From: Oikopleura dioica
Taxonomy: Eukaryota; Animalia; Chordata
DNA: 64,000 bases
Reading direction: 5' to 3'
Assembly (NCBI GenBank): GCA_907165135.1
Contig: OU015567.1
Location: 2,046,001 to 2,110,000 of the forward strand
The notes under the pieces were generated by a model. It saw nothing but the letters and a program-made list of their open reading frames with translations. It had not been told where the DNA came from and made no database searches. Below, piece by piece: positions 1-55,360 of this stretch. The translations under genes were made by a program, and so were the position numbers. The first letter of the stretch is position 1; each line of letters starts with the position of its first letter.

Positions 1-3000
1 CGTCCACACAGCTCGGTCTGAAAGTACAGCCCAGGGCGACATTTTTCAAATTCTCCGCCCCGGTGAAGTACATCGCTTTATCGTTGACGCTGATTTTACC
101 AATGCAGCCGGAGAAGCTTCCTGATTCCTTTGTGATATGCCCTGCGGCGAGTGCTTTGGCGAAGAGGGTCGAAGAAAGACCACCAGTGAAGAGATCACCG
201 GAGTAAATAAGGTCGATGATCTGGGTCGGTTTCGCCTTGAGCGCTGAGGTGGTCAGATCGTTGAGTTTAACTTTGACAGCAGTTCTATTGATGAAAACTT
301 CAAGGCGATGCTCCACATCGATTTCAAGTGATTTCTCGAGGAAGAGCGCTACATCTGCGTGGCGAACTCTGATCATTCCGGAAATTAGTTCTACCGCGAT
401 GAAGTCATTTTTCTCCCCGTCGCCGAGATAAAGAATAATTCCGCTTTTCCTTTCAGGGCGAATGGTCAAAGTGATATTGATGGTTGATCTTGTGCGCATG
501 ATTGAGCTTGAAGAAAACGCAGGAGTCGGAAGAACGATCTTTGAGTAGCTTCTTTTTTCAGAGAGAGAAATGGTTTCGATATTCTCGCACTGTTGTCCAG
601 AAAAACCATTGGAGCATCTGCAGCTGTCGGTTTTCTTGTCGAATGAATGACCATTTCTGCATCTCTCATCACGCTGGATTTGTTGAGTGCCGTCATTCAT
701 GTAGACCTCGTATCGACGCTCGAGCTCACAATATTGCCCGGTAAAATTGCTCGGACAGTTGCAGGAGAAAAGAGGCGCAGAGTGAGTAACTTGGCAAACG
801 CCACCATTGAAGCAAGGACTGCCATCGGAAGATTGACATGGACTTTGGGGTCGATCACAGTCTTTGCCTGTCCAGCCTCGAGGGCACTCGCACTCGTAGC
901 CGCCAAGAGATGGAATGCATCGACCGTCGTTTCGGCAGGGTTTTCGAGAGATGCACATGTCCTCATGCTTGCATCCATCGAGGGAGAGAAGTTTACCTTC
1001 CGGACAGAGGCATTGTGGCGCGTTGATCGAATCTACACAACCGATAGAATCAGCTGGACAAGATTTTGTAGCACAAAGGTCGATCTTTTCCTCGCAGTGT
1101 TGCCCACCAAAGCCAGTTAAGCAATCGCACCAGTAGTTTTGCGGCTCGTCCTCGCTCAAACCAGAGCGGCAGATTCCATTAAAGCAAGGTGAGTCAGCGC
1201 AAGGATCAGCAATAGCTCTTTGTTCGCATGTATTGCCCTTGAAACCTTTTGGACAAATGCATTGGAAGGAAAAAGGAGAGGAGCTAGAGTTGAGGCATTT
1301 GCCATCGTTTTTGCAAGGATTGGAAGCGCAGACATTGCATTGGTCCTCGTTGTTGTCACTGTCGCAGAATTGCCTCATCGTTGGCGGAATTTGTCGATCG
1401 ATCAAAGTTGCGCCTTTGAGTCGTCCAGGACTAGCACAGGTTGCTTCACCCGTCTCCGTATGTGCCTGCTGTATCCACCTGGCAAGCCATTCCAGTTTGC
1501 AATCACAGTCGAGCTCATTGTCTGACAGGGAAATTCTAGTGATGGAGTTGAGCACAGAAGAAGGAAACGCGCTCTCTGGGATTCTCTTGATTCTGTTTTC
1601 GTTCAACGTCAGCATGTTCAAATTTGGCAGACCAGCGAACGAGTTTTCGATCAAACAACCGATCCGATTTCCAGCAAGCATGAGAAACTTCAATTTTGGC
1701 AGGGAGAAGGTGTTCGGAGAAATGCCTCGAATGCGGTTGGAACTGAGATCAAGGAGGACTAGTTCTTTGAAATTTTGCAGCTCGGGGAGGGACTCGATTT
1801 GGTTGTTTTTGAGGAGAAGTTCTTTGGTATCAGTGGGAATCATTTCGAGTTCGATTGAGGTGAGTTGGCGGTTGGAGCAGTCGACGAGTTTGGTTTTTTC
1901 GTTGCAGTGGCATTTTCGAGGGCACTAGAATTGACATTATAAGTCTTGTTCTTTCAAGAGGGTCGGATTATGCCTTGCTTCGATATTAGTTTATTAGTGA
2001 TTATTCCGAATAAGAGCTGCAAATTAAACACCATTTAAAAAAATATATATTTTGATTATGGTTTCTTATTCTTTTTTATATTTTTCTCACCTTCGATCCA
2101 GTCTGACATTTAACATGGTCCGTCTCGCCTTGCGCACATTTCAAGTCGCTAAGTGGAATATCCAAAATATAATATCCTTGCAAATACTGTGGCTCGTTAC
2201 ACTTCGGGAAGCCCAGCGCAATTTGATTCTTGACGCTTTGCATATATTTCGCGGTGCTTTGGAAGAGGCAATTGCAGTTGACTGGGTTTTTCATGATGTT
2301 GAAGTATTCCAAGTTTTTGAATTGCTGGAGCGTTCCGTCGCCGATTTCTTGAAGATTGTTTTGGAAGAGGTCGAGGCGGGAGAGCTTTTCGAGATCGAAA
2401 GGCATGAAGGTATCATTGGCGATGCAGGAGATCTGGTTCTCTCGGAGCGACAGTTCTTTGAGATTCGAGAGCCCGGAGAAAGCGAATTGAGGCAAAGCAT
2501 TGATGGCGTTTGAATCAAGCTTGAGGATTTCCAGCATTTTGAAGTCCTTGAACATATCGACGGTCAGTTCCAGCTGATTGTTTTTCAAGATCAGTTCTTT
2601 CAGAGAATATCTGGAAAGACTCTTTGGCAATTCTCTCAGACGGTTGTTTGAAAGATCCAAAGATGTCATGAAGCTGGGGAAAGGGAAATTGACACTGCTC
2701 CAGTTTTGACCAACGCATCGGACTTGGCCGGAGCGTGCGTCGCAGGAACAGCCCCGAGGGCACTTCACGTCGCATGTGGAAACTGTTCTTTCTTCGTAGC
2801 GAGAACATTTCAAGTCGGACTTATTGAGATTTTGCAGAAGAGTTCCGGCTTTATTTCCTGGTCCAGCGCATTTGGCCCGCTGAGCTCGGGTTCGAGAAGA
2901 ATCAAAGTAGTCAGCAAGCCATTTCAGCTGACAATCGCAGTTCCATGGGTTGTCAAACAGCATCCTGAAACAAATGTGTCAATTTTTAAATTCTGAACTC

Positions 3001-6000
3001 ACGGTAACTCAAACTAGTCTCATTATCCGCTAAACAATGGCGAAGTAACACATCTGCTATTATGCCCTGGCACAATGAAAGAAGCGAGATTGTTAAAAAA
3101 AATGTGTCTTTTCGTGAAAATCAGGCGCCTTTGAGAGTAGATCAGTTTTAAGTTCACTCAGCTGAATCTCGGCTCAAAAAGACGACGCAAATTATGAAGG
3201 GCTTACAGGGTTTGAATCTTCTTATTCGAGCTAAAGAAACCATTTGGCAGCGTTGTTAACTCGTTGTTGTGAAGAGCACTGAAAGAAAAAAGTATTGAAA
3301 TTGAAATCAAGGAAGAAAAAAAAATGAAAAGCAAAAATGCTAATTGTCAGTAATGAAGACTTACATTATTAATGAGCCGCGCTGATCGTTGAGCAAATCA
3401 GCTGGTAAGCACTTTAGCTTATTACTGTTCATCATGATCGTCTGTAGCCCTCTGAGCCCGTTGAGGGTGCCCGGGCCAATACTCGTTAATTGATTCTCGT
3501 ACAAATACAGTTTTTGCAGGTTCACCAGGCCATCGAACGCTTTCTCGTCGATTGTTTCGATTTTGTTCTTTGAAAGATCGAGTCCCTGGATTCGACGATA
3601 TTGGGTGAACTCGCGGGCGCGGAGTTCAGTTAGCTCGTTGTCTTCAAGAATCAGGTTGACGACGTTTTCAGGCCCGTGCTTTGGAACTTTTTGCAGTCGC
3701 TTGTCTCGGCAATTCATATGGATTGTATCCGAAGTTGCTTCTTTGCAAGTGCACTCTGCGGGGCAAGTTGGTTCTTCCGGGCATTTTCGCAAGTCCGGTA
3801 CATCGTACGAAGTCGGGCAGTAAAGTCGGCTCGGGTCCAAGTCCCGGATAAGCTCATGCATCGACAAGTCGCCATCTTTGAGGCGCCCGCCGGAGCAAGT
3901 CGTGTAAGGGGCGATTTCATCTGATCTCCTGAAAGTTGTGGTAAGAAACATGTTATGCTAAAAGCAATTTGAAGAGTGATTTTGACCCTGATCAAGGTAA
4001 TTTTCTGTTGTGGTCTTCAATTAAGCGCGACCGCGAGATGTTGATCGAGCATTGGTCGACTGACTCTGGGCTCACCTTTTACTGTCCAAGTAGCTGATGA
4101 AGTAGCTGATTTGGCAGTCGCAGTAAAGCGGTAATTTCTCCACGCTCAGCACTTTCAGCTTTTTCAGCTTGTCGAAGATCCCTGGCTGGAAGAAACTGAT
4201 CATGTTTTCTTTCAAATGGAGCTCTCGCAATCGTCGGCAGGAGTTGAACAAGTTTTCGTCGAGGCAAGAGAGCTTGTTGCCGGTCAAATGGATGGTCTTG
4301 AGCTTTTTGGAGCGACGAAATTGCCGTTTGTTTAAGGATAAAAGGCCGTTGTTGGAAATATCCAATTTTTGAAGACGCTTGAGTTGGTGCAACAGCTTCG
4401 ACGGAAGCCGGGTGAGATCATTGTCGTCCAGGTACCTAAACAGAACATGACATGGAACATGGTGCTGGCACACTGCCAAATCGTAAGAGATTGAATTGAT
4501 TCCGGAAGGGGGAATTCAGATTATTGTTTTTACTTACAGTCGAGTTAGTTTTTTAGTCTTTTCGAAGGATTGCTGGTCGATGTGGTCGATTTGATTCTGC
4601 CCGACATTCCTGAATTTAATTTCTAACACTTTTGGTTGGAAAAATGAGGACAAAAACGAATGATCTAGACCTGGTCATCTTTCCGTCCAGGAGGTCCTCC
4701 ATCTATCAAATGGCGCTGAATAGCCCAGCGTGAGCGCAAATAATGAAATAATTGAAACGTAAATTTGTCCCTTTTCCTCTGTCAAAGTGGCGGAAAGCCA
4801 ATAAGACGAACAGTACTTACAGAACTTTGAGATTGACGAAGTAGCGCAGAGCTTCTCGGTAGATGTTCGTCAGGTTGTTGCCTCGAAGATCCCTTAAAAA
4901 TGCATGTTTGATTATGAAATCTTTACTTTTTCATAATTTTGTTGGTAAATTGCCTTTTATCGATATTGCAAAGGTTATCTTAGGTCCTGGTTCAAATTGC
5001 TTTTCCAATTATTTTAGGGCGAATCCGAAATAATTTAATCCCGGGTCATTAAATCGCACCAATCGTCATTAGTTTCATTCAACTCGCGACTATCACGCAG
5101 CTGGAGAACTTTGAAAATCATGGCTCTCCTCCAAGTGCCGAGAAAAGAAAAGATAAAGAGAGAGCGAAAGTCAGATGAAATACTGTAATAAATCGCGGTC
5201 GGCGACTGGGGGTAAAGCAGTCTGGCGGCGCGAGGGGTTATTTACGATGGGACTGTGGCAACATTTTGGGCAGAATATTTTCAAGGCTGCTTCAACATTC
5301 GCAAATCTCGGGCCAAGGGTTAATTTTGATGAATAATGGGGTTGATTTTCGAGAAGTTTCAGCTCAAATCTGTCTGTTCAAAAAGCAAACTGTAAAATAA
5401 ATACAGTTATTAACAGTTATAATCGAGTTTCCTTTGAAGCGAGTCGGAAAGAAACGTTCAACTTCACACGAGCTATTGTCTCCCACTTGAAGAGTGCTTT
5501 TGGGAGGCGTTATCAGACGAGTATTTGACTCCGGACGGCGCTTTGTCCGCCCAACGGAAGAACTATGGATTCAGAATCGGCCCAATTTCGTATTCCAATG
5601 GACAAACTAAAACCACTGACAGAGCTTCTGAAACCAGTGGGATTTTGGTCGACGTCATAATTGGAAAAGGAAATTCAAAGATTGGAAAATAATCAGCTCG
5701 AACTCGGGGCGCAAATGAGAAATTGGAAAACCTGTCATGTTTCGCATGTATTTCGCGAATTAGGGAGCAAGGGCTTAATTGAGCCCGATCGCCCAGGTCA
5801 AGTGTGTCCAACTTGTTACCAGTCTTGTTTCTCCAGATTGATGGGCAAACCCTTGAGCCCAAAATTCCAAGCCGCGCTTCGAGGATTCGAAGAATTTTGG
5901 AAGATTCGAAATTCATAGTTCAAATTGAAAGATTCTCGATTCAAACAGATCGGCATCTTGAACGAAGCACTTCAGGTCGAGTTCGATTGTCTGATCGTAT

Positions 6001-9000
6001 GAAAAAGTGGGAAAGAGAGCAAATGAAGAAGGAAAATTCATTTGGCAAAAATTTTTGGCTCAGACTTTGACCGAGCGATCGAGTTGGATGTCTCCAGGTG
6101 GCATCGGAAGTAAAGGCGAATGAAACGTCACATGATTGATTTATCAGATCGCTCCATAAATCCGTTACAAAACCATCATCATCAAAAAACACACATTACG
6201 CTGCCATGATTCTTGCTGATTTACCCCCTTGCCATGTAAATTTTGGAAAACCACGAACGTCATGTTCACTAGAACGAAGATTCTCGCTTGAGCGATTTTC
6301 GAAGCTACATTTTGATAATTGACGGTGCCCGGTTCGGGAGTCGTCGCGTGAGCTGGTTATCGCCAAATTGCCGTTTTATATGACCTCGGTATTATTTTTT
6401 AGATAACCCTAATACAACTTCGTTGTTTCGAGAAAAAATATTTCGAGATTCAACTCAATAATTATAAATAAAAAGGTGAAAGAAGCGACATCTCGACAAT
6501 CTGCGTAGAAACCTGAGTCAGGGTACTGTAATCGCTAGAATTGAAAGCCGCGCAGCGGCTTTTATAAAAGAAGCCGCATTTTTTGAAAATAAAATCTTGT
6601 AAGCGGCTTTTCATTCAGGCTTTTTCAGGGCCCTGAGTCAGGTTTTTACACAGGAAAAACTGGTGATTTTCGACTTTATTTTCCCATTAGCATTTTGTTT
6701 TTGATTATGAATGGGAATTCAACACCTTGTAAAATTAACCACCCATTCCCAAACGTCAGTAATTACCGCCTATTACGGGCCGGGTGCCCTTTCAATTTAC
6801 TGTGACGAGTCCAGTGGGGAGCCCAGTGTCTGTCTTTCGGAGCGGCACCAAATCGAGAAGATCGGATGCATGGCTGATTCCAAATAAAGCCACGCGAGGG
6901 ACAATAAAAATATGCTGCTTTTCTCAATACGATTGCTCAAATTTGAGGGGAAAATTTACGGAGATTTGATTATCCTAAATGGTAATTACGCTCATTGTTT
7001 TCAGGACAGTGAAAGTATTTGCACGAAACCTAATGGAGTTGACATCATATCACCTAATTTTTGAGCCTGTTAGATTAATAAGAATGATTTTTTACAGTCC
7101 TTGAAGATTCTCAAAAGCCTTCCAATCTAGTCTGCTGTCCCAAGGACAGCAAATCAGCATAGAGAGTGGATATCTCTCGCCCTGAAATCCCCGCTGTCAA
7201 GCCATAATGAGTGGAAGTAATCCGCTGTCAGATAATTTTCCGCTGGAATGTTGCTCGGAATTCGTCCCAGCCAGTTTGAAGAGTGACTAGCCGGTACTCT
7301 TTTTTACATTTTTATTGGAAATTATTCATTATTGGAGCAATGAATTAAAAAAAATGACCAAAACAAGTACTAATGATTCATTAGCAGTTTTATGATAAAG
7401 GTGATGATTTCTTGGCGAGGAAAAAAGTACTGAATGGGTGCGAATATATTTTACAAGCATTTTTTATCAGATGAATTGCAAATTCTTTTCCGGCTTTATG
7501 TTTCCGCCGGATGGATAGTTATATGACCTGCGTCACAGTTAGATTTTTTTTCAATGCAGAATTTCTCCGAAAAATGGTCAGTTCATAATATGAGATGATG
7601 ACCTGTGGATTCCGCCTTGACCTTCGACCAACAATTTTGTTGGTGTTACCGCTAGTCTTGCGTTTTTCCTATTTCCCAGCGTAATTTGCGAATAAACACC
7701 CCTCGACGATAGGGATTTGTCCTTGTTTGCGCGGTTCCTTTGAAGGCATCCGTTTCCGCTCAGAAGTATCGAGCTCTGCAATCTCCCAAATGTCAAGCGA
7801 GACTCTCACTCAAAGTTTTCAAAATTTTCGATGATTTTTTTCAGCTGTCATGTCCCTTAATCCGCACTGTCAAAACGAAGTAAAAGTCGTTTCTCTTCCC
7901 AAAAAGAGAAACCGCGCGAAAACATGCGCAACCGCGGTCAAGACTACCCATGGAATTTGAAGAAATTAAAAACTTCTCAACTTCCCATGGATAAATCGTT
8001 TCTTCAAGTGAAAAAATGAGCAAGTGAAAAAATGAGCCACAAAATCATCGTTTTTTGATATTTCAAAAAGACCACCCCGCTGCTCAGAAGCAGCTGGATC
8101 CTTCTCTCACAGAACTCCACCTGGGTCGGCGCACCTGTTGAGTTAACATTTTCAAAATCAAAATATGAATTTTTCAAAGCGCGAATTTTGGTTCTTGTTC
8201 TTTGCTTTAAAAAGGTCATCGACTCGAATCATCTTCAACAGTTTCGAATCCGCAACTATTTTTCTTGTTTTCCGGCGTTGAATCTGATCAATCTGATTAG
8301 GAGCATCAAGATCTGTTGGTGGTTTACCGGTTCAATGAAAAACCGGAAGAAGATCGAGAAAAAAAGAAGGACCGACCGATCCGGGGCCGGATTGAAGGAT
8401 CGGAAAACCGGTAAGCCGGGATCAGAAGGAACCCGGCGTTCGAAACTGTGATGACTAAAGAAAAGTTGACTTTTCATGATTTTTAAATCAATTTATTCCG
8501 TATTGGTTTTTAAGGTCCATACCCTGGCGTTTTGCCAATGTTTGTGCCCGGAAAAGCAACAGCAGAACACGCCAAAACCACGGACCGGAAGCAAACCGCC
8601 AAATTATAAACTTGACGGGCACTACTTGATAGTTATCACAATAAACTGCGTATTTTTCCGATTCGAGAGTAATAATATGAAATGCAAGGAAAAAAGTGCT
8701 TGTTTAGAGCACTTTTTGACCTCTTTTTGACCTGTTTTTTCGTTGAATGAAAAATTTTTTGTATCAAAAAGAGGGCTTATAATTTCTAGCCCCATCTGCT
8801 TGGCATTAAAAGTCCATCTCAAAATGGGGGTCAATTATTTTCCGATTATCACGACTCGCGAATTTTTTTTAGTGGCGCAGTAAAATTCACACATCAATCA
8901 CAACTATGGGATCAATAAAAAAACGATCACATAGGTTTTCATCAAAGGCATCGTTCCTGAGGCTCCATCAAATTTTCAAAACGGCAAGGACTTTTTGCCA

Positions 9001-9760
9001 CGAAGATCGTTTCTTTTTTGGATAAGAGGGGGGAGAGGGGGAGTAACGGCTTTTTGAGGGACATGAAAGGGAGGATAAGACATGGATAGGTTAAAATGAG
9101 ATTGAAAAGGGTTCGATGATTTTTATTTTTAAGGGTATATACAATGAAAAACGAAATTTCTGAGGGTTTTCAGATCCATTTCCTTTCATTCTAAAAAAGC
9201 TTTTTTTCCCAAAAAGTATATTTTATGACATGATCCAGGTCGATAAAACAAGCATAAAATTGAAAAATGAAGTATCAAGTGCTGAATCTCGATCGAAAAT
9301 TACGACCTGAAATCTATCTCCCCCCATTGCCAAGATTTTTCTCAGATAGCCAGATAAGTTATCGTAATGTTTCGATTCTGATTTCATGCGTGTAAAATAC
9401 GAGACCACGTGATAGGGCGAACTCGGGAGAAATTTATGATTCTGTTCTTCCTTTCAAGATCAAAGCAAAGATGATTTCTCTGTCCCAAGGAGCTTAGCAC
9501 TTGTTGAAAGAGTGCTGACTCAGCACTGCTGAGACAGCCACCTTAGCTGAGTTATGCCAAGCCCTCTCAATAAGTACTCATTCAGACGAATACTTACAGT
9601 CGTTCAATGTTCTGGGCTTCGTTTCGGGAGATTTCGGGAAAGTCGGAGAATCCTCGACGGGAACAATCAAGCTCGATTTTGCCCGATTTGAGCGGTTTTT
9701 CTTCGCATCCGTGTTTTTCAGAAGCATTTTGAGGGATGAAAATGGCTTTGATTGTTTTAA
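1..9760 (-). CDS. slit: Slit axon-guidance protein (4 LRR domains + EGF repeats + laminin G); multi-exon, 3' end runs off the window, first (signal peptide) exon not located
   Basis: Exon ~9760-9598 (LDCSRRGFSDFPEISRNEAQNIERL, CT|GTAAGT) joins in phase to AG|G-DLRGNNLTNI at ~4895. LRR exons at 4610-4540, 4430-4076, 3930-3370, 3285-3210 and 2965-2080 carry LRRNT/LRRCT caps (CPAECTC, NPWNCDCQLKWL, NPVNCNC). Exon from 1924 (CPRKCHCNE) continues through EGF repeats into LamG (NITLTIRPERKSGIILYLGD). This is the Slit domain order. Confidence 0.93.
6509..6645. mobile_element. Short inverted-repeat element (MITE-like) bounded on both sides by the palindrome CCTGAGTCAGG, in the slit intron
   Basis: aaacctgagtcagggtactg ... 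cagggccctgagtcaggttt, with internal inverted aaagccgc/gcggcttt. A related shorter copy lies at ~28466-28512. Confidence 0.55.
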
Positions 9761-46534: not shown

Positions 46535-47747
46535 TTTTTGCGTAAATAATCAAATTAAGACATATTATTTTAGACCCTTTTTCCTTTTCATTGAATAAAT
46601 ATGCAAAAACACTCTTTTTTGTTTCGGACTTTTTAGTCAGAAGTATTTACAGGAAGCCAGCGAAAGCATGTGCAGTATCCCCAGCTGCAAAAATAGTGAG
46701 CACATTCTCGATTTGGTAACTCTTAAATATTGGTAAGGAGTCGTTAGAGTTTCAGACTACCTATTGATTACCTCTATTCTCTTCGGAGCGACGATCGTAG
46801 GACGGGCATCGTCTTCTTGTCAATTTTCCGCAGTCATGTATCGCGTGAGACTTCAATTTATCATTAGAAATCTTATTTTTTTTCTTCAAATCATTTTAAA
46901 ATTATCTATTTGGAGAGCGTTTTTTCCCAAAAATAACTCAAGATTTGAAGAAATGCAAATGAAACATAATTTGCTACACAAGGCATCAATCTCTCAATTC
47001 TTACCCTTTCGTACGGAGATGACATGGCCAGAGCAAAAAATAGAAAAATCTTCATTTCGCGAACTCAGCGTGATTTCAAATTAAGGCTTAACCGACTTGC
47101 CGAGAAGATCTTGAGCGACAGAATCGTTAACCGAAAATGTGGGTATTTTCTGTTGAACTTAATTTTTCGATTGTCTATTTTTCGAATGCGTTATTTAGGT
47201 TTATTTGGTCGCTTTTATCGTCATTTTTTCGCGTCTATTTTTTCGCGTCTATTTTATAAGGCATTCTAAACCTATCTTAGCTTCTGGTAATAAAACAAAA
47301 ACAATGAGTCTCGTTGATCGGAACCGGCCGCGGATTGCTCTGTTCGCTGGACAGAAAAAGACAAGAAAAATATAATCTTAATTTTAAACGAAAAAAAGCA
47401 TTAACTTTTCAAACATCGATTTTGGGCTGATACCCTTTGTCTTTTAGAAAATTTTAAATGTCTTATTAGCTTATACGACTATAGTTGGTTTGTGGTACCA
47501 AAAAAGTAACCCTGCTCGTCCGACTTTCAAAGATTTCAAACACGAATATCGAGCCAGATCGATGGTCCCTCTATTTTATAGTATACGGTACAATTATCCG
47601 AAGTCTATTTTTGAGAGCTTGAGAGATCAAATTTTATCAGTGGCGTCGTCTCTTTGGGCTGTAATAATTTAGCTTTATAAAAATGACACCGCAGCTTTTC
47701 GACTCATTTTTGTAATTGGCTTTCTCCGCCACATATTTTTATTCCAC

Positions 47748-48573
47748 ATGGGCAGCTGCAACTCGACGTTACCAAACACGGAGATAGAGAAACTCGAAGC
47801 AAAAACCCATTTTTCGAAAGCTGAGATTCTTCTCTGGCACAAGGGTTTTATGCAGGCACATCGATATAGGTCTTTTAATTGGGGTAGAGATATTTTTTAG
47901 GATTGCCCCGCCGGAGAATTAAGCAGAGAAGATTTTATCGACATCTACGCAAGCTTCTTCGAGAAGGGAGATGCTTGCGACTTTGCAAATATTATATTCA
48001 AGGAAAGACCCATTCGCCGCTTCTATCTTATAGCTTTTTTATTTTTTAGGTTTTTGATATAAACGGCGACGGAACGATCGATTTTGAAGAATTTCTCAGG
48101 TCTGGTTTCTTTTAGAAGTCTCCGTTTTTTCGAGAAGACTTGTCAAAAAGGACACGTAGACTCAGTTTCATAATTTCTAAAAAAATGAATTAGTGCTCTC
48201 TCGATCACTTCTAAAGGAACGATGGACGAGAAGCTCGAATGGGTAAGAGACGAGTTCGAGTTTTGGGGGTACTTTAGATGTTGTCTTAGGCGTTTCAAGT
48301 ATACGATGTTGACAACACGGGAACCATCAATCGTGAAAAAATGAAGCAAATTGTCAGGGCGATGATAACAATGGCAGGGGACAAAAATCCACAGGAGGAT
48401 GTTTACAAAAGGGTGGCGATGATTTACGACCTTATGGACAAGGCAAGACGAATTTACTTGTTCTCAGTTAAGAATATCCAATTAAGGACGGTAACGGCAT
48501 GCTTTCGAAAGAAGATTTCATTTCTGCTGCAAAACGTGGCGAAGGCATCATTCAGGCTCTTTCTTTCTTATAA
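47748..48573 (+). CDS. Neuronal calcium sensor family EF-hand protein (NCS-1/neurocalcin/hippocalcin-like)
   Basis: MGSCNS myristoylation-type start; THFSKAEILLWHKGFMQ|DCPAG; VFDINGDGTIDFEEF; GTMDEKLEW|AFQVYDVDNTG; MDK|DGNGMLSKEDF; includes GC-AG and GA-AG introns. Confidence 0.92.
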
Positions 48574-48707: not shown

Positions 48708-49856
48708 TCAGGAGCCCCTGTAAGTAGAGTAGGAAAAGGGAGTACAGAGAATTGGCACATGAAAATGCTCTTCAATTTGCTCTTTTTTGATTCGGAAGAC
48801 CATTTCTGGTCGACGGTAAAAAACTTCCCTTCCAGAGTAGTACTCGTCGGTGAAGAAAACGAGTTTGTAGAAGACATCCGCGTTGGCGTTGATTTTGCGG
48901 ATTTCTTCGTCGCCGAGGACTGCTGTGTCAGTTCGACCATCTGAATTGGTTCTCCTGAAAGCATAATTTTCAGCGTGAAAATAATTTTCCGGCAATCTTA
49001 CAGAGTACGGAGAGGAGTCCAGTTCGAAGCGACACCCTCTCCTTGATCAGTTTGGAAGAAAACATCGATTTTCATTCCAGAGCCGGGGCGGCCAGTGCTT
49101 AAGGGATCCCCTCCTAGATTTCGCAAACTTTGACGTCGAACTTATTTTTTCTGGGCTTAGCTTTTTAAATGGTATATGGCTCATTTTGAAGCCCGTTTCT
49201 CAGTGAACAAACTCTAGCACAGAAAAAAATTTTCATAAGGGGAAACACCTCGAAAAGCGGGCTGAATACATAGATAACACCATTTTGGCCTTTTTAAAAG
49301 TCGAACTAGTTTTTTTGCTCATTTAAAGAGCCCTAAATCAATTTTTATTTTCTTTGTTGATCCCTCATCTATAATCTCTTGTTCAGAGAAATCGTTTGGT
49401 CAAGTCAGAAAATTTTTTTCTTAAGAAAAATTTTGATGCTATTTTGGCCCTTTTCTGGCCTTCAGTTGCTCTCTGGCGCAGATATATGGTCAAAAATCCA
49501 AATGCGGTGATCAGATTCTTACTCAGTGCACTGTAAGCGTTCGAAAGACCTCTTGTACGGCTTTTTTCGATGACATCGAAAAGTCGATAAAAAATTGCGA
49601 TTTTAACGTTAAGTACAAATTTCATGCATTTTTTCGATTTTCGAGGGTCAATATTTTGGGTAAAGATGCTCGTTAGGGGGCCATATAATATATCAAAATG
49701 ATCCTCAGAGCACGGGGATTTTAAAAATGCCGCATAGACACCCGTCATAAAGACTCGGGAAATCGGGAAGGGATCCCTTAAATCGAGAACATGAGTAGTG
49801 ATCCCAGTCGCGTCTACTTTCCAAAAAATAGCGAAAAGCATCGCAAAAACCCTCAT
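48708..49856 (-). CDS. urah: 5-hydroxyisourate hydrolase (transthyretin-like protein), first exon interrupted by a MITE
   Basis: Reconstructed: MRVFAMLFAIFWKVDATGITTHVLDL|STGRPGSGMKIDVFF...WTPLRTL|RTNSDGR...YKLVFFTDEYY...HFHVPILCTPFSYSTYRGS*. Catalytic His (THV), Arg (DGR), His (HxH) and the YRGS terminus are all present. Confidence 0.92.
49103..49777. mobile_element. TTAA-flanked MITE (Kolobok-like termini; TA-TSD reading also possible) inside the HIU hydrolase coding exon
   Basis: TTAA (49099-49102)|gggatcccctcctagatttc ... gaaatcgggaagggatccc|TTAA (49778-49781). Confidence 0.9.
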
Positions 49857-50022
49857 TTTCGGATCTCTTTACGAGTGTTTTTGAATCACATCGTTCTTTC
49901 GGAAGCTTTAATTCTCACAAACACAAAAGCGTGCAAACATTCTTTAAGTTCCATTATAAAGAAGCGGAAGAGACATTTTTTATGGCAATACTCCGTTTTA
50001 CTTACGGGAATCTCCCACTTAA

Positions 50023-50404
50023 GGGGGAGATCGACGAGAATAAGAATTTTCAGAACAAATTGTCGGAAAAATCCGATTGTACAATTACATTTTGACTTCT
50101 CGGTTGGAATAAGAAGGGTATAAAGAATCTATCGGAAAAGAGTTTCGCGAGTCTTCGCAGAAAATTCGTGCACTTCTTCACCAAAAGGGTCCGAAAAAAA
50201 AGATAACTAAAAAATGGCCATTTGGGGTCCATTTTGAGACAAGTTTTCGACCATTTTTTCTGGTCAAAATATTTCCTTTTTTCGCCGATAGATTTTTTCA
50301 ACCCTATTTATTTCACCCGAAAAGTCCTAATTTTTCCAGAAAATCAGGTTTTCTCGGAATTTTGTTCCAAAAAATCCCGTTTCTCGTCGATTCCCCCTCC
50401 CTCC
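50023..50404. mobile_element. TTAA-flanked MITE, intergenic
   Basis: TTAA|gggggagatcgacgagaa ... ttctcgtcgattcccc..ctcc|TTAA. Confidence 0.75.
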
Positions 50405-53169: not shown

Positions 53170-55360
53170 ATGTTTTCGAAAAGATTCATTGATGAGTACA
53201 ACAAAATTCGGTGGGAGGATGGCAATGAAAACTTCAATCGGCATTCAGGAATGTGATTTTTTGATTTATCGCTCAAAATGAGAATTTTTAAACTTTGAAA
53301 ACCATCGACCAGGCGAGCCGAACGTTACCAACCTGCCAAATTTATTCAATGCTGACTTCAAGAGCTCAATTACTTTCGCTCGAATTTTCCAGCGCTGGAT
53401 TAAGCCAATCGCAGCGGAATTCATCGCAACGTTTATGCTTGTCTTTTGGGCTTGCATGCTTCAGCCGGGAAACGCTCGTCTAAATTACCAATTGCTAATG
53501 CATAACCAATTTTGGTAATCCATTACAGTGGGTTGCGCAGTTGGTTGCCCCTTTGCGATTGCAGCTTTGGTTGCCTCTTTGCCCGCGCTTTTTCTATTGT
53601 TCCTTTCTAGACTCGCTCAAAGTGCTTGCAGGATTTGTTGATCCTTCACCCGCTCTTTAGGGGGCAACTACCTGCGCAACCCACTGTACCAATTTTTGAT
53701 AATACATCACCAAACTTCCCGAAAAAGGCCAATTTCGTTTAGTGAGAGAGTCTGTGTGCGCTCGTTGCCTGTTTGATAGGTTAAGTTTGGGAGTGATTTA
53801 CTCATTTTTCGACAAAAAAGTCGAAGTCAATAAAAAATTGGTAATGGATTATCAACTTTTGGTAATGCATTACCAAAATCTTTGGTTATTTAGACGAGCG
53901 TCCCCGCTTCAGCCGAGCTCGCCCGAAAACACTTCTGATCCGGCCTGGCCGTTGATTGCTGCTCTTGCAGCTGGAATCAATCTGATCATTATCATCACAA
54001 TGTTTTGGGAGATTTGCATTATTCAGTTCAATCCCTGCATAACTGTGGCTCTTTGCCTCGCTGGCTCAATCCCGTGGCGAGTTTGCCTGCCAAACATTAT
54101 CCTCCCGGCAAAGTGACATTTCCAGGAAACAACATGCTATCCCGCCTTTGTCACTCACTATCAAGGGAGTGGTGGTCGAGATTGAGACCCGGTTTTTCTA
54201 AAAATTTAAGTATTCCTTTTGTCGGGCAGTTTTTTTTCACGAATGAAAAAAAAATGGTTTGTATCTTTTTTCGTATTAAAGGTGGTTTTGGATCAAAATG
54301 AACCCTTATTCTCGACCACCCTTACCCCCGTCATTTTTTTCGACAAAAGCTTACGAATTATGGCTACTTAGTGTACCTTGTGGCTTAATTCGTCATTCGA
54401 ATTTGTAAAAAGCAAGTTTCGCCAAGAAAAATCTGATTTTCTTTCACAATAAGGCCATTTTCGTCATTTTTCGGCGTTAAGTCGAATTTTCATACGCGAT
54501 TGTAAGGGTTAAAGGCAGAGTTCCAAAAATCGCACGTACGCACGCGTGTTTTTGAACTCTGGTGTTAGGGTTGAGATAGACCCGCAAAAAATGAAGCGTC
54601 ACAATCTTTTTTTTTTTTGCCCGTAGAATCCATTTTCGGGCTCAAAATTTTGAAATTCCGAATATCGATTTTTCGAAGATTGATGACAGGGGATCCTTAA
54701 GAAAAAAAAAATCAACATTCGGAATTTTTTTTTCGTAATTTCGGCACTGATATAAGGGCAAGTAAGGTACTGTGATAGCGGGGTTCGTCTGAAAATGTCA
54801 CTCTTTCCAATTTTCCAATGCTTTGGGGCGTATCTCGCAGCCTTGTTGGCTTCCAATCTCCGTGGCTCGCCTGTTGGGATGATACCAATCACAGAAGAAT
54901 CAGATCTGCATGCAATTTTCTGGGCAGAATTTTGGTTTACCTTTATGATGGCGCTAACAGCGTTAATGGCGATTATGGACCCAGGCTATTTTCATTCGCT
55001 GACGCCAGTCGCCATCGGATTGACTGTTACACAAGGAGTATTCGGGGGATGGTTCCTTGGAGCTGGGTGTATGAACCCTGCGAGGTACTTTCTTTTAAGG
55101 TCTTGAGCGCGAGTTTTGATTTGCATTTCAGAATTTTCGGACCAGCTCTTGTTTCGTTGAACTTCGACTATCACTGGGTTTGGTGGCTGTCGGAGATTCT
55201 TGGAGCATCTTTTGCAGTTCTTGTGGAATCTCTTTTCTTTGCGCCGATTAAAATCAGCGAAGCGAGCGAAAAATCGAACCTTATTTGGTGGCGAGCGTTA
55301 ATGATGATTTTCAGAAAAAAATACGAGTCTTTTGGAGATAACGTTGAACTTGCGCTGTAA
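53170..55360 (+). CDS. AQP8: AQP8-like aquaporin with NPC/NPA motifs; TM3 exon interrupted by a TIR element
   Basis: IAAEFIATFMLVFWAC; QFNPCITVALCL; AEFWFTFMMALTALM; GCMNPAR|IFGPALV...HWVWW (AQP8-type GCMNPAR.FGPA); stop at 55360. Confidence 0.8.
53526..53686. mobile_element. Tc1/mariner-type MITE, intronic, related to 52507-52681
   Basis: TA|cagtgggttgcgcagttggttgcccc ... ggggcaactacctgcgcaacccactg|TA; shared core cccgc.ctttttctattg...ctaga...aaagtg. Confidence 0.85.
54106..54808. mobile_element. Old TIR element with nested MITE fragments, inside the aquaporin coding sequence
   Basis: TIR ggcaaagtgacatttccag versus reverse complement of ctgaaaatgtcactctttcc; degenerate 8-bp TSD tatcctcc / aattttcc; removing it restores PNII(L/F)QCFGAYL. 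Confidence 0.7.

Follow-up and report, generated by a model that had tools for sequence, protein, structure and literature searches.

The kinds of intron closest to the locus described here are already known: the MITE introns of Fritillaria, the introners of other organisms, and the GV-AG introns of Oikopleura. In the larvacean Fritillaria, the existence of non-canonical introns derived from MITEs is established, and pairing of their ends through inverted repeats has been proposed (reviewed in PMC11282704). The U2-type spliceosome of Fritillaria borealis tolerates non-GT ends, and the U12 spliceosome is absent. Its MITE introns, mostly AG-AC or AG-AT and with genome-wide RNA evidence, come from small inverted-repeat transposons at lineage-specific coding positions (Henriet et al. 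2019, via PMC11282704 and PMC13326754). Our locus, in the same animal class, likewise has a small inverted-repeat transposon at a lineage-specific coding position, but the candidate ends would be GG-AG, the family is of the TTAA type, and the insertion is a single young copy.

In the introners of Micromonas, Aureococcus and others (Huff et al. 2016; Gozashti et al. 2022, PMC9860276), one splice site comes from a non-autonomous transposon, and the second is completed by either the target-site duplication or the flank. Their removal is scar-free or nearly so, as it would be for the candidate here. Introners, however, are canonical GT/AG introns with hundreds of genic copies and RNA support, whereas our candidate has a non-canonical donor, and an acceptor that needs a chance G after the target.

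Oikopleura itself has a GV/AG intron class (PMC13326754). In the OKI2018_I69 genome the median intron is 49 bp, and 11% of introns are non-GT/AG (PMC8008620). The non-GT donors have been described as 'upstream AG, downstream A', AG^GVA, where the caret marks the splice site (PMC7072748). The candidate shares with these GV-AG introns (~11-12% of introns; PMC8008620, PMC7072748) the AG^G-V-A donor, the AG acceptor and, presumably, a single U2-type spliceosome. They are typically ~45-50 nt in length. The candidate would be longer, at 679 nt, would enclose an intact transposon, and would have both of its splice sites within a 17-bp duplex. What is new here, as read from the sequences, is an uninterrupted exon 1 in wild contigs with TTGAG at the insertion site, and hence an age for the insertion.

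A TTAA element in exon 1 of the HIUase gene

We have analyzed a 64-kb window of contig OU015567.1 (Oikopleura dioica OKI2018_I69 chr2; positions 2,046,001-2,110,000), this being the whole stretch of DNA studied; unless stated otherwise, coordinates are counted from its first nucleotide. The gene for 5-hydroxyisourate hydrolase (HIUase), an enzyme of the urate pathway, lies on the minus strand with its ATG at 49856. Its first exon contains a transposable element, corresponding to ~2,095,103-2,095,777 of the contig. The features of the locus are collected in Table 1.

Table 1. Features of the HIUase locus and the inserted element, in window coordinates
Feature	Position	Strand	Basis or content
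Non-autonomous TTAA element (MITE), 675 bp	49103..49777		Ends and contig depth
TTAA target-site duplication, copy 1	49778..49781		Exact
TTAA target-site duplication, copy 2	49099..49102		Exact
Terminal inverted repeat, sense-strand upstream arm, GGGATCCCTTCC	49766..49777		Inverted-end match
Terminal inverted repeat, other arm, GGGATCCCCTCC on + strand	49103..49114		Inverted-end match
HIUase exon 1a	49777..49856	-	ATG, leader peptide, GITTHVLDL motif; in frame, aligns to relatives' N-termini
Proposed 679-nt GG...AG intron	49098..49776	-	Donor AAG^GGATCC, acceptor CCCTTAAG^CACT; sequence compatibility only
HIUase exon 1b	49002..49097	-	STGRPGSGMKIDVFF...LRTL
Ordinary 47-nt GT-AG intron	48955..49001	-	GTAAGA...TTTCAG; found also in wild contigs L004 and L005
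HIUase exon 2	48708..48954	-	DGRTD, HFHVP, C-terminal YRGS, then stop codon

Of the 12 bases in each inverted end of the element, 11 match, and the pairing continues to form a 17-bp duplex. The 12-mer TTAAGGGATCCC occurs in the window only at 49099-49110 (+) and 49770-49781 (-), i.e., at both ends of the element. There are 328 TTAA sites in the window, and apart from one A-rich chance pair this is the sole TTAA-flanked inverted-repeat element among them; no second copy of the family was found in the 64 kb. Contig word depth in two DNA runs of the same lineage is nevertheless ~450-9100 over 49104-49773, compared with ~60-105 in the flanks. This high depth, with a step that coincides with the element borders, indicates a multi-copy family. 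A protein search with the longest ORF of the element (130 aa) gave no homologues, and an Rfam search in and near the element returned nothing credible.

Because it combines a TTAA duplication with short inverted ends and no coding capacity, we class the element, on its sequence features, as a piggyBac-like MITE. It has these properties, as well as the multi-copy state, in common with MITEs of the piggyBac superfamily. Classical piggyBac termini are CCC...GGG, whereas those of the element are the palindrome GGGATCCC, and membership of the superfamily is putative. Two contigs of DNA run X4 (described below) match the element as far as 49767 and continue as GGAAAAGAATTCTTAAGAATT..., which suggests a related subfamily with the end GAATTC rather than GGATCC, again beside TTAAG.

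On the minus strand the junctions read GTT CTC GAT TTAA^GGGATCCC...GGGATCCC^TTAA GC ACT GGC (carets here marking the element borders), precisely as set out in an earlier note on this DNA. Exon 1a ends in TTAAG, made up of the first TTAA copy and the initial G of the element. Removal of 679 nt (49776..49098) together with the 47-nt intron (49001..48955) generates a 140-aa ORF, the product of which matches the Pfam profile of the HIUase/transthyretin family, PF00576, over positions 1-109 of 109 (E 1e-27) and solved HIUases with E down to 1e-14. There is no gap at the junction in the alignment with zebrafish HIUase 2h1x (ITTHVLDLSTGRPGSGMKI vs LSTHVLNIAQGVPGANMTI). Related planktonic HIUases are also gapless across it, one of them with HVLDLS.

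The signature residues of the enzyme are complete, comprising the His of THVLD, the Arg of DGR, HFHVP and YRGS, aligned to 2h1x and 2gpz. The catalytic His motif is encoded in exon 1a, upstream of the element. The earlier note had held that cutting 49776-49098 (GG...AG) restores L-S-T exactly and that the rest of the enzyme (H, R, HxH, YRGS) is intact, and both statements stand. In the unspliced sequence the reading frame stays open for 157 codons before a stop. The protein collection contained no exact match to this 157-aa read-through ORF, to the 59-aa exon-1 ORF or to the 140-aa product.

Non-GT introns of the neighbouring NCS gene

The neuronal-calcium-sensor (NCS) gene at 47748-48573 (+) encodes 182 aa in six exons, as assigned by homology. 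Three of its introns are non-GT (GC-AG 47856-47900, GA-AG 48003-48049 and GC-AG 48443-48486), alongside two GT-AG introns. The respective non-GT donors are CAG^GC, AAG^GA and AAG^GC. The intron at 48443-48486 has the acceptor TTAAG^G, and exons 5 and 6, on either side of it, meet between residues 158 and 159 of NCS-1 2l2e. An ORF-chaining survey of introns in the window yielded 21 junctions and no reliable non-GT set.

The public NCS model has 134 aa over 47137-48573, vs the 182 aa given by homology, and has probably been mis-built around the non-GT introns. This bears on the public protein for the HIUase gene, Oidioi.mRNA.OKI2018_I69.chr2.g4442.t1. That protein (106 aa) matches the C-terminal 76% of the restored product at 100% identity, and the locus that encodes it is identical to the window. 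It begins at Met35 (49073-49075), within exon 1b and downstream of the element, so leaving out exon 1a. The model was built with RNA-seq hints and has no intron joining across the element. Since the annotation pipeline misses non-GT introns, as in the NCS gene, g4442.t1 counts only mildly against splicing of the element.

The candidate GG-AG intron

There are six cut registers that restore the coding sequence, provided by the four TTAA bases and one shared G. The sole register among them that starts with G and ends with AG is GG(49776)...AG(49098), which owes its existence to the exonic G that follows the second TTAA. The predicted junction in the spliced mRNA is CTCGATTTAAG^CACTGGCCGC. The removal had been presented as base-perfect; while the restoration is indeed exact, G follows TTAA at 19% of the TTAA sites in the window, and so a perfect register of this kind is a coincidence of about 1 in 5. 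The likeness drawn earlier between its AG^G junction and the GA and GC donors of the NCS gene is borne out by the three homology-supported donors and the TTAAG^ acceptor described above.

The sequence AAG^GGA...TTAAG^ has the AG^G-V-A donor and AG acceptor of the GV-AG class. At 679 nt it is ~14 times the species median (49 bp, PMC8008620), outside the short length of that class. The donor at 49776 lacks the +4A/+5G that 2 of the 3 NCS non-GT donors have, and the proposed acceptor has no pyrimidine tract.

The terminal duplex of 17 bp has a calculated stability of -31 kcal/mol. One strand runs from exon position -6 to intron position +11, and the other is formed by the final 17 nt of the intron; in the folded RNA both splice sites would thus be paired. 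The duplex could help splicing by joining the ends, or it could hinder it by hiding the splice sites. Terminal-stem folds of the three NCS non-GT introns are weak and inconsistent (-2.6 to -6.1 kcal/mol).

Might the element instead be spliced at other sites? The earlier note had dismissed the GT dinucleotides just inside the element as being in the wrong phase. This is correct for those nearest the element end, which are out of phase with the acceptor at 49098, but in-frame GT-AG pairs do exist (49713 to 49098, and 49741 to 49114 or 49111). Their use would add ~17-22 residues beside the catalytic His. The element plus TTAA has five AGs within its final 50 nt. One of these forms TAG^G at 49114, lying 16 nt before the proposed acceptor; it looks the more conventional site, and joining 49776 to it would shift the frame. 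However, enumeration of site pairs revealed no good-looking GT donor (AG^GTAAG-like) inside the element, and the peptides added by the in-frame pairs would be inserted into the first strand, a region without gaps in the alignment of the relatives and the solved HIUases. We consider splicing at these sites improbable.

Age of the insertion

Searching with the 59-aa exon-1 product identified two 59-aa ORFs in marine-metagenome assemblies. The first (P0121) is 97% identical to the query, and lies on contig L004 (1030 nt), from a metagenome assembly with PRJEB4352 in its record name. The second (P0122; contig L005) is 73% identical. In both contigs exon 1 is uninterrupted and the same small GT-AG intron is present. 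The insertion site reads GAT TTG AGC in each, with no TTAA (TTGAG vs TTAAG).

Since neither wild contig has TTAA at the site, the alignments show the target to have arisen on the Okinawa branch, by a synonymous G-to-A change (TTG-to-TTA) that preceded the insertion. By the same comparison the insertion is shown to be recent on the Okinawa haplotype, because the closest wild haplotype lacks it and both its target-site duplication and its inverted ends are intact. Over the whole coding sequence, the Okinawa gene differs from that of L004 by 9 synonymous and 4 non-synonymous changes (dS 0.10, dN 0.012). The ratio of 0.12 indicates that purifying selection acts on the HIUase gene in this lineage. 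Given the youth of the insertion, however, the intact ORF says little about whether the insertion is tolerated.

The site is also uninterrupted in two more distant relatives, L002 and L003, in which a GT-AG intron lies eight codons further on; the Okinawa gene is without it. These planktonic HIUase genes (L003:1151-1608 and L002:4873-5333) are 44-47% identical, with their one GT-AG intron after ...GLPG(Q/V), and have no intron at the Okinawa position, LRTL^RTNSDG. HIUase intron positions have turned over between the Okinawa gene and these relatives. Among metatranscriptome-derived proteins, P0008 has exactly 16 residues fewer than the near-identical P0004. The missing segment, VTTHVLDTTIGLPGQG, contains the catalytic His motif, and in that species a GT donor further upstream (GGA^GTT) has possibly been used.

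The insertion in other Okinawa-lineage DNA

Two further Okinawa-lineage data sets of whole-animal DNA carry the insertion: X4, a run deposited under a different species label (2025), and X5. In X4, each border is crossed by a contig free of mismatches (48828-49208 and 49726-50258, respectively) at a depth of 78-85 vs 84-99 in the flanks, so that the insertion looks homozygous. In X5 a contig bridges the low-coordinate border. The earlier note had suggested seeking an empty allele in other individuals and assemblies; no empty-site junction was seen in X4 or X5. In the Okinawa-lineage DNA sampled the insertion is common, and the nearest wild haplotype lacks it.

Depth in X5 falls to about half over 48828-49123 (58.6 vs 105.9 in the flank), a region containing exon 2, the small intron and exon 1b. 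No X5 contig covers 49774-49867, and there is no alternative haplotype contig there. A second allele could be concealed by this hole and the half depth.

Elements of the piggyBac type characteristically leave by precise excision, with a single TTAA restored. The reading frame might thus be repaired in the DNA, in somatic or germline cells, rather than by splicing of the RNA, and the TTAA duplication and intact ends of the element are in keeping with this. Yet there is no empty-site contig or junction in the whole-animal DNA of X4 and X5, and the piggyBac assignment is itself putative. We regard repair at the DNA level as very improbable.

HIUase is dispensable in some animals. The insertion might then be a young loss-of-function or hypomorphic allele that has become common by drift in the Okinawan culture or population, its transcript either read through to the stop after 157 codons or mis-spliced and degraded. 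The youth of the insertion, the public model without an intron over the element, and the 19% frequency of TTAAG are all compatible with such an allele. Against this, the insertion is at about flank depth at both borders in X4, with no empty-site junction in either run, and the sequence contains a scar-free site of a kind used by the species. We consider a null allele quite possible, while rather doubting it.

We also looked for the transcript. Two oligo-dT RNA runs with the same species label gave 0 reads over the whole 2 kb; even the NCS exons and the repeats were without reads, and hence these runs probably derive from another cryptic lineage. Among indexed RNA runs, words from the HIUase exons were found in only one marine metatranscriptome, at 0.19. 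Scans of JGI metagenomes for the spliced junction, the empty junction and the protein gave no match.

From the match of the junction to the non-GT sites of the species and the full-length enzyme that it restores, productive GG-AG splicing may be a main fate of the transcript, a reading that we hold tentatively, and at a little below an even chance.

Proposed route from insertion to intron

Taking GG-AG splicing as the working model, the intron would have arisen as follows. The synonymous change from TTG to TTA created the TTAA target, into which the 675-bp MITE then inserted within exon 1 of the HIUase gene. Because each end of the element is palindromic (GGGATCCC), insertion in either orientation would place TTAAG^GGA upstream, a non-canonical donor of the AG^GVA type. 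The chance G after the downstream TTAA would then provide the acceptor TTAAG^. A permissive U2-type spliceosome could then remove the element together with one TTAA (679 nt, GG-AG), giving ...HVLDL-STGRP..., with the 17-bp duplex of the inverted ends bringing the two splice sites together.

If the element is precisely spliced in its carriers, the locus would represent the dated birth of a chordate intron from a DNA transposon, with the pre-insertion state still present in wild DNA and the target made by a single synonymous change. It would tie the GV-AG introns of Oikopleura to transposon activity, as has been proposed for Fritillaria, and would provide a simple reporter for how a U2-type spliceosome picks non-GT sites. 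If it is not spliced, a dispensable enzyme gene has simply acquired a young null allele of the ordinary kind.

A broader proposal would be that the TTAA family is a ready-made generator of chordate introns. Through its palindromic ends every insertion, in either orientation, would bring an AG^GGA donor, and those at TTAAG would be removable without a scar and so be near-neutral. With the duplex joining the sites, such exonic insertions would feed the fast gain of non-GT introns in Oikopleura. On present evidence we think this rather unlikely.

Other inverted-repeat elements near the locus

A second inverted-repeat element (50022-50398) lies upstream of the HIUase gene, at a distance of 166 nt from the ATG. 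Its two arms, at 50022-50135 and at 50285-50398, are 71% alike, and a contig depth of ~600-4200 points to a multi-copy family. As it is present in L004, it is older than the exonic insertion. A further inverted-repeat element at ~54085-54800 (+), with ends ~AAAGTGACATTTCCAG / CTGAAAATGTCACTCTTT, splits an aquaporin-like exon between ...RVCLPNII and FQFSNALGAY...; its sequence is unrelated to that of the TTAA element.
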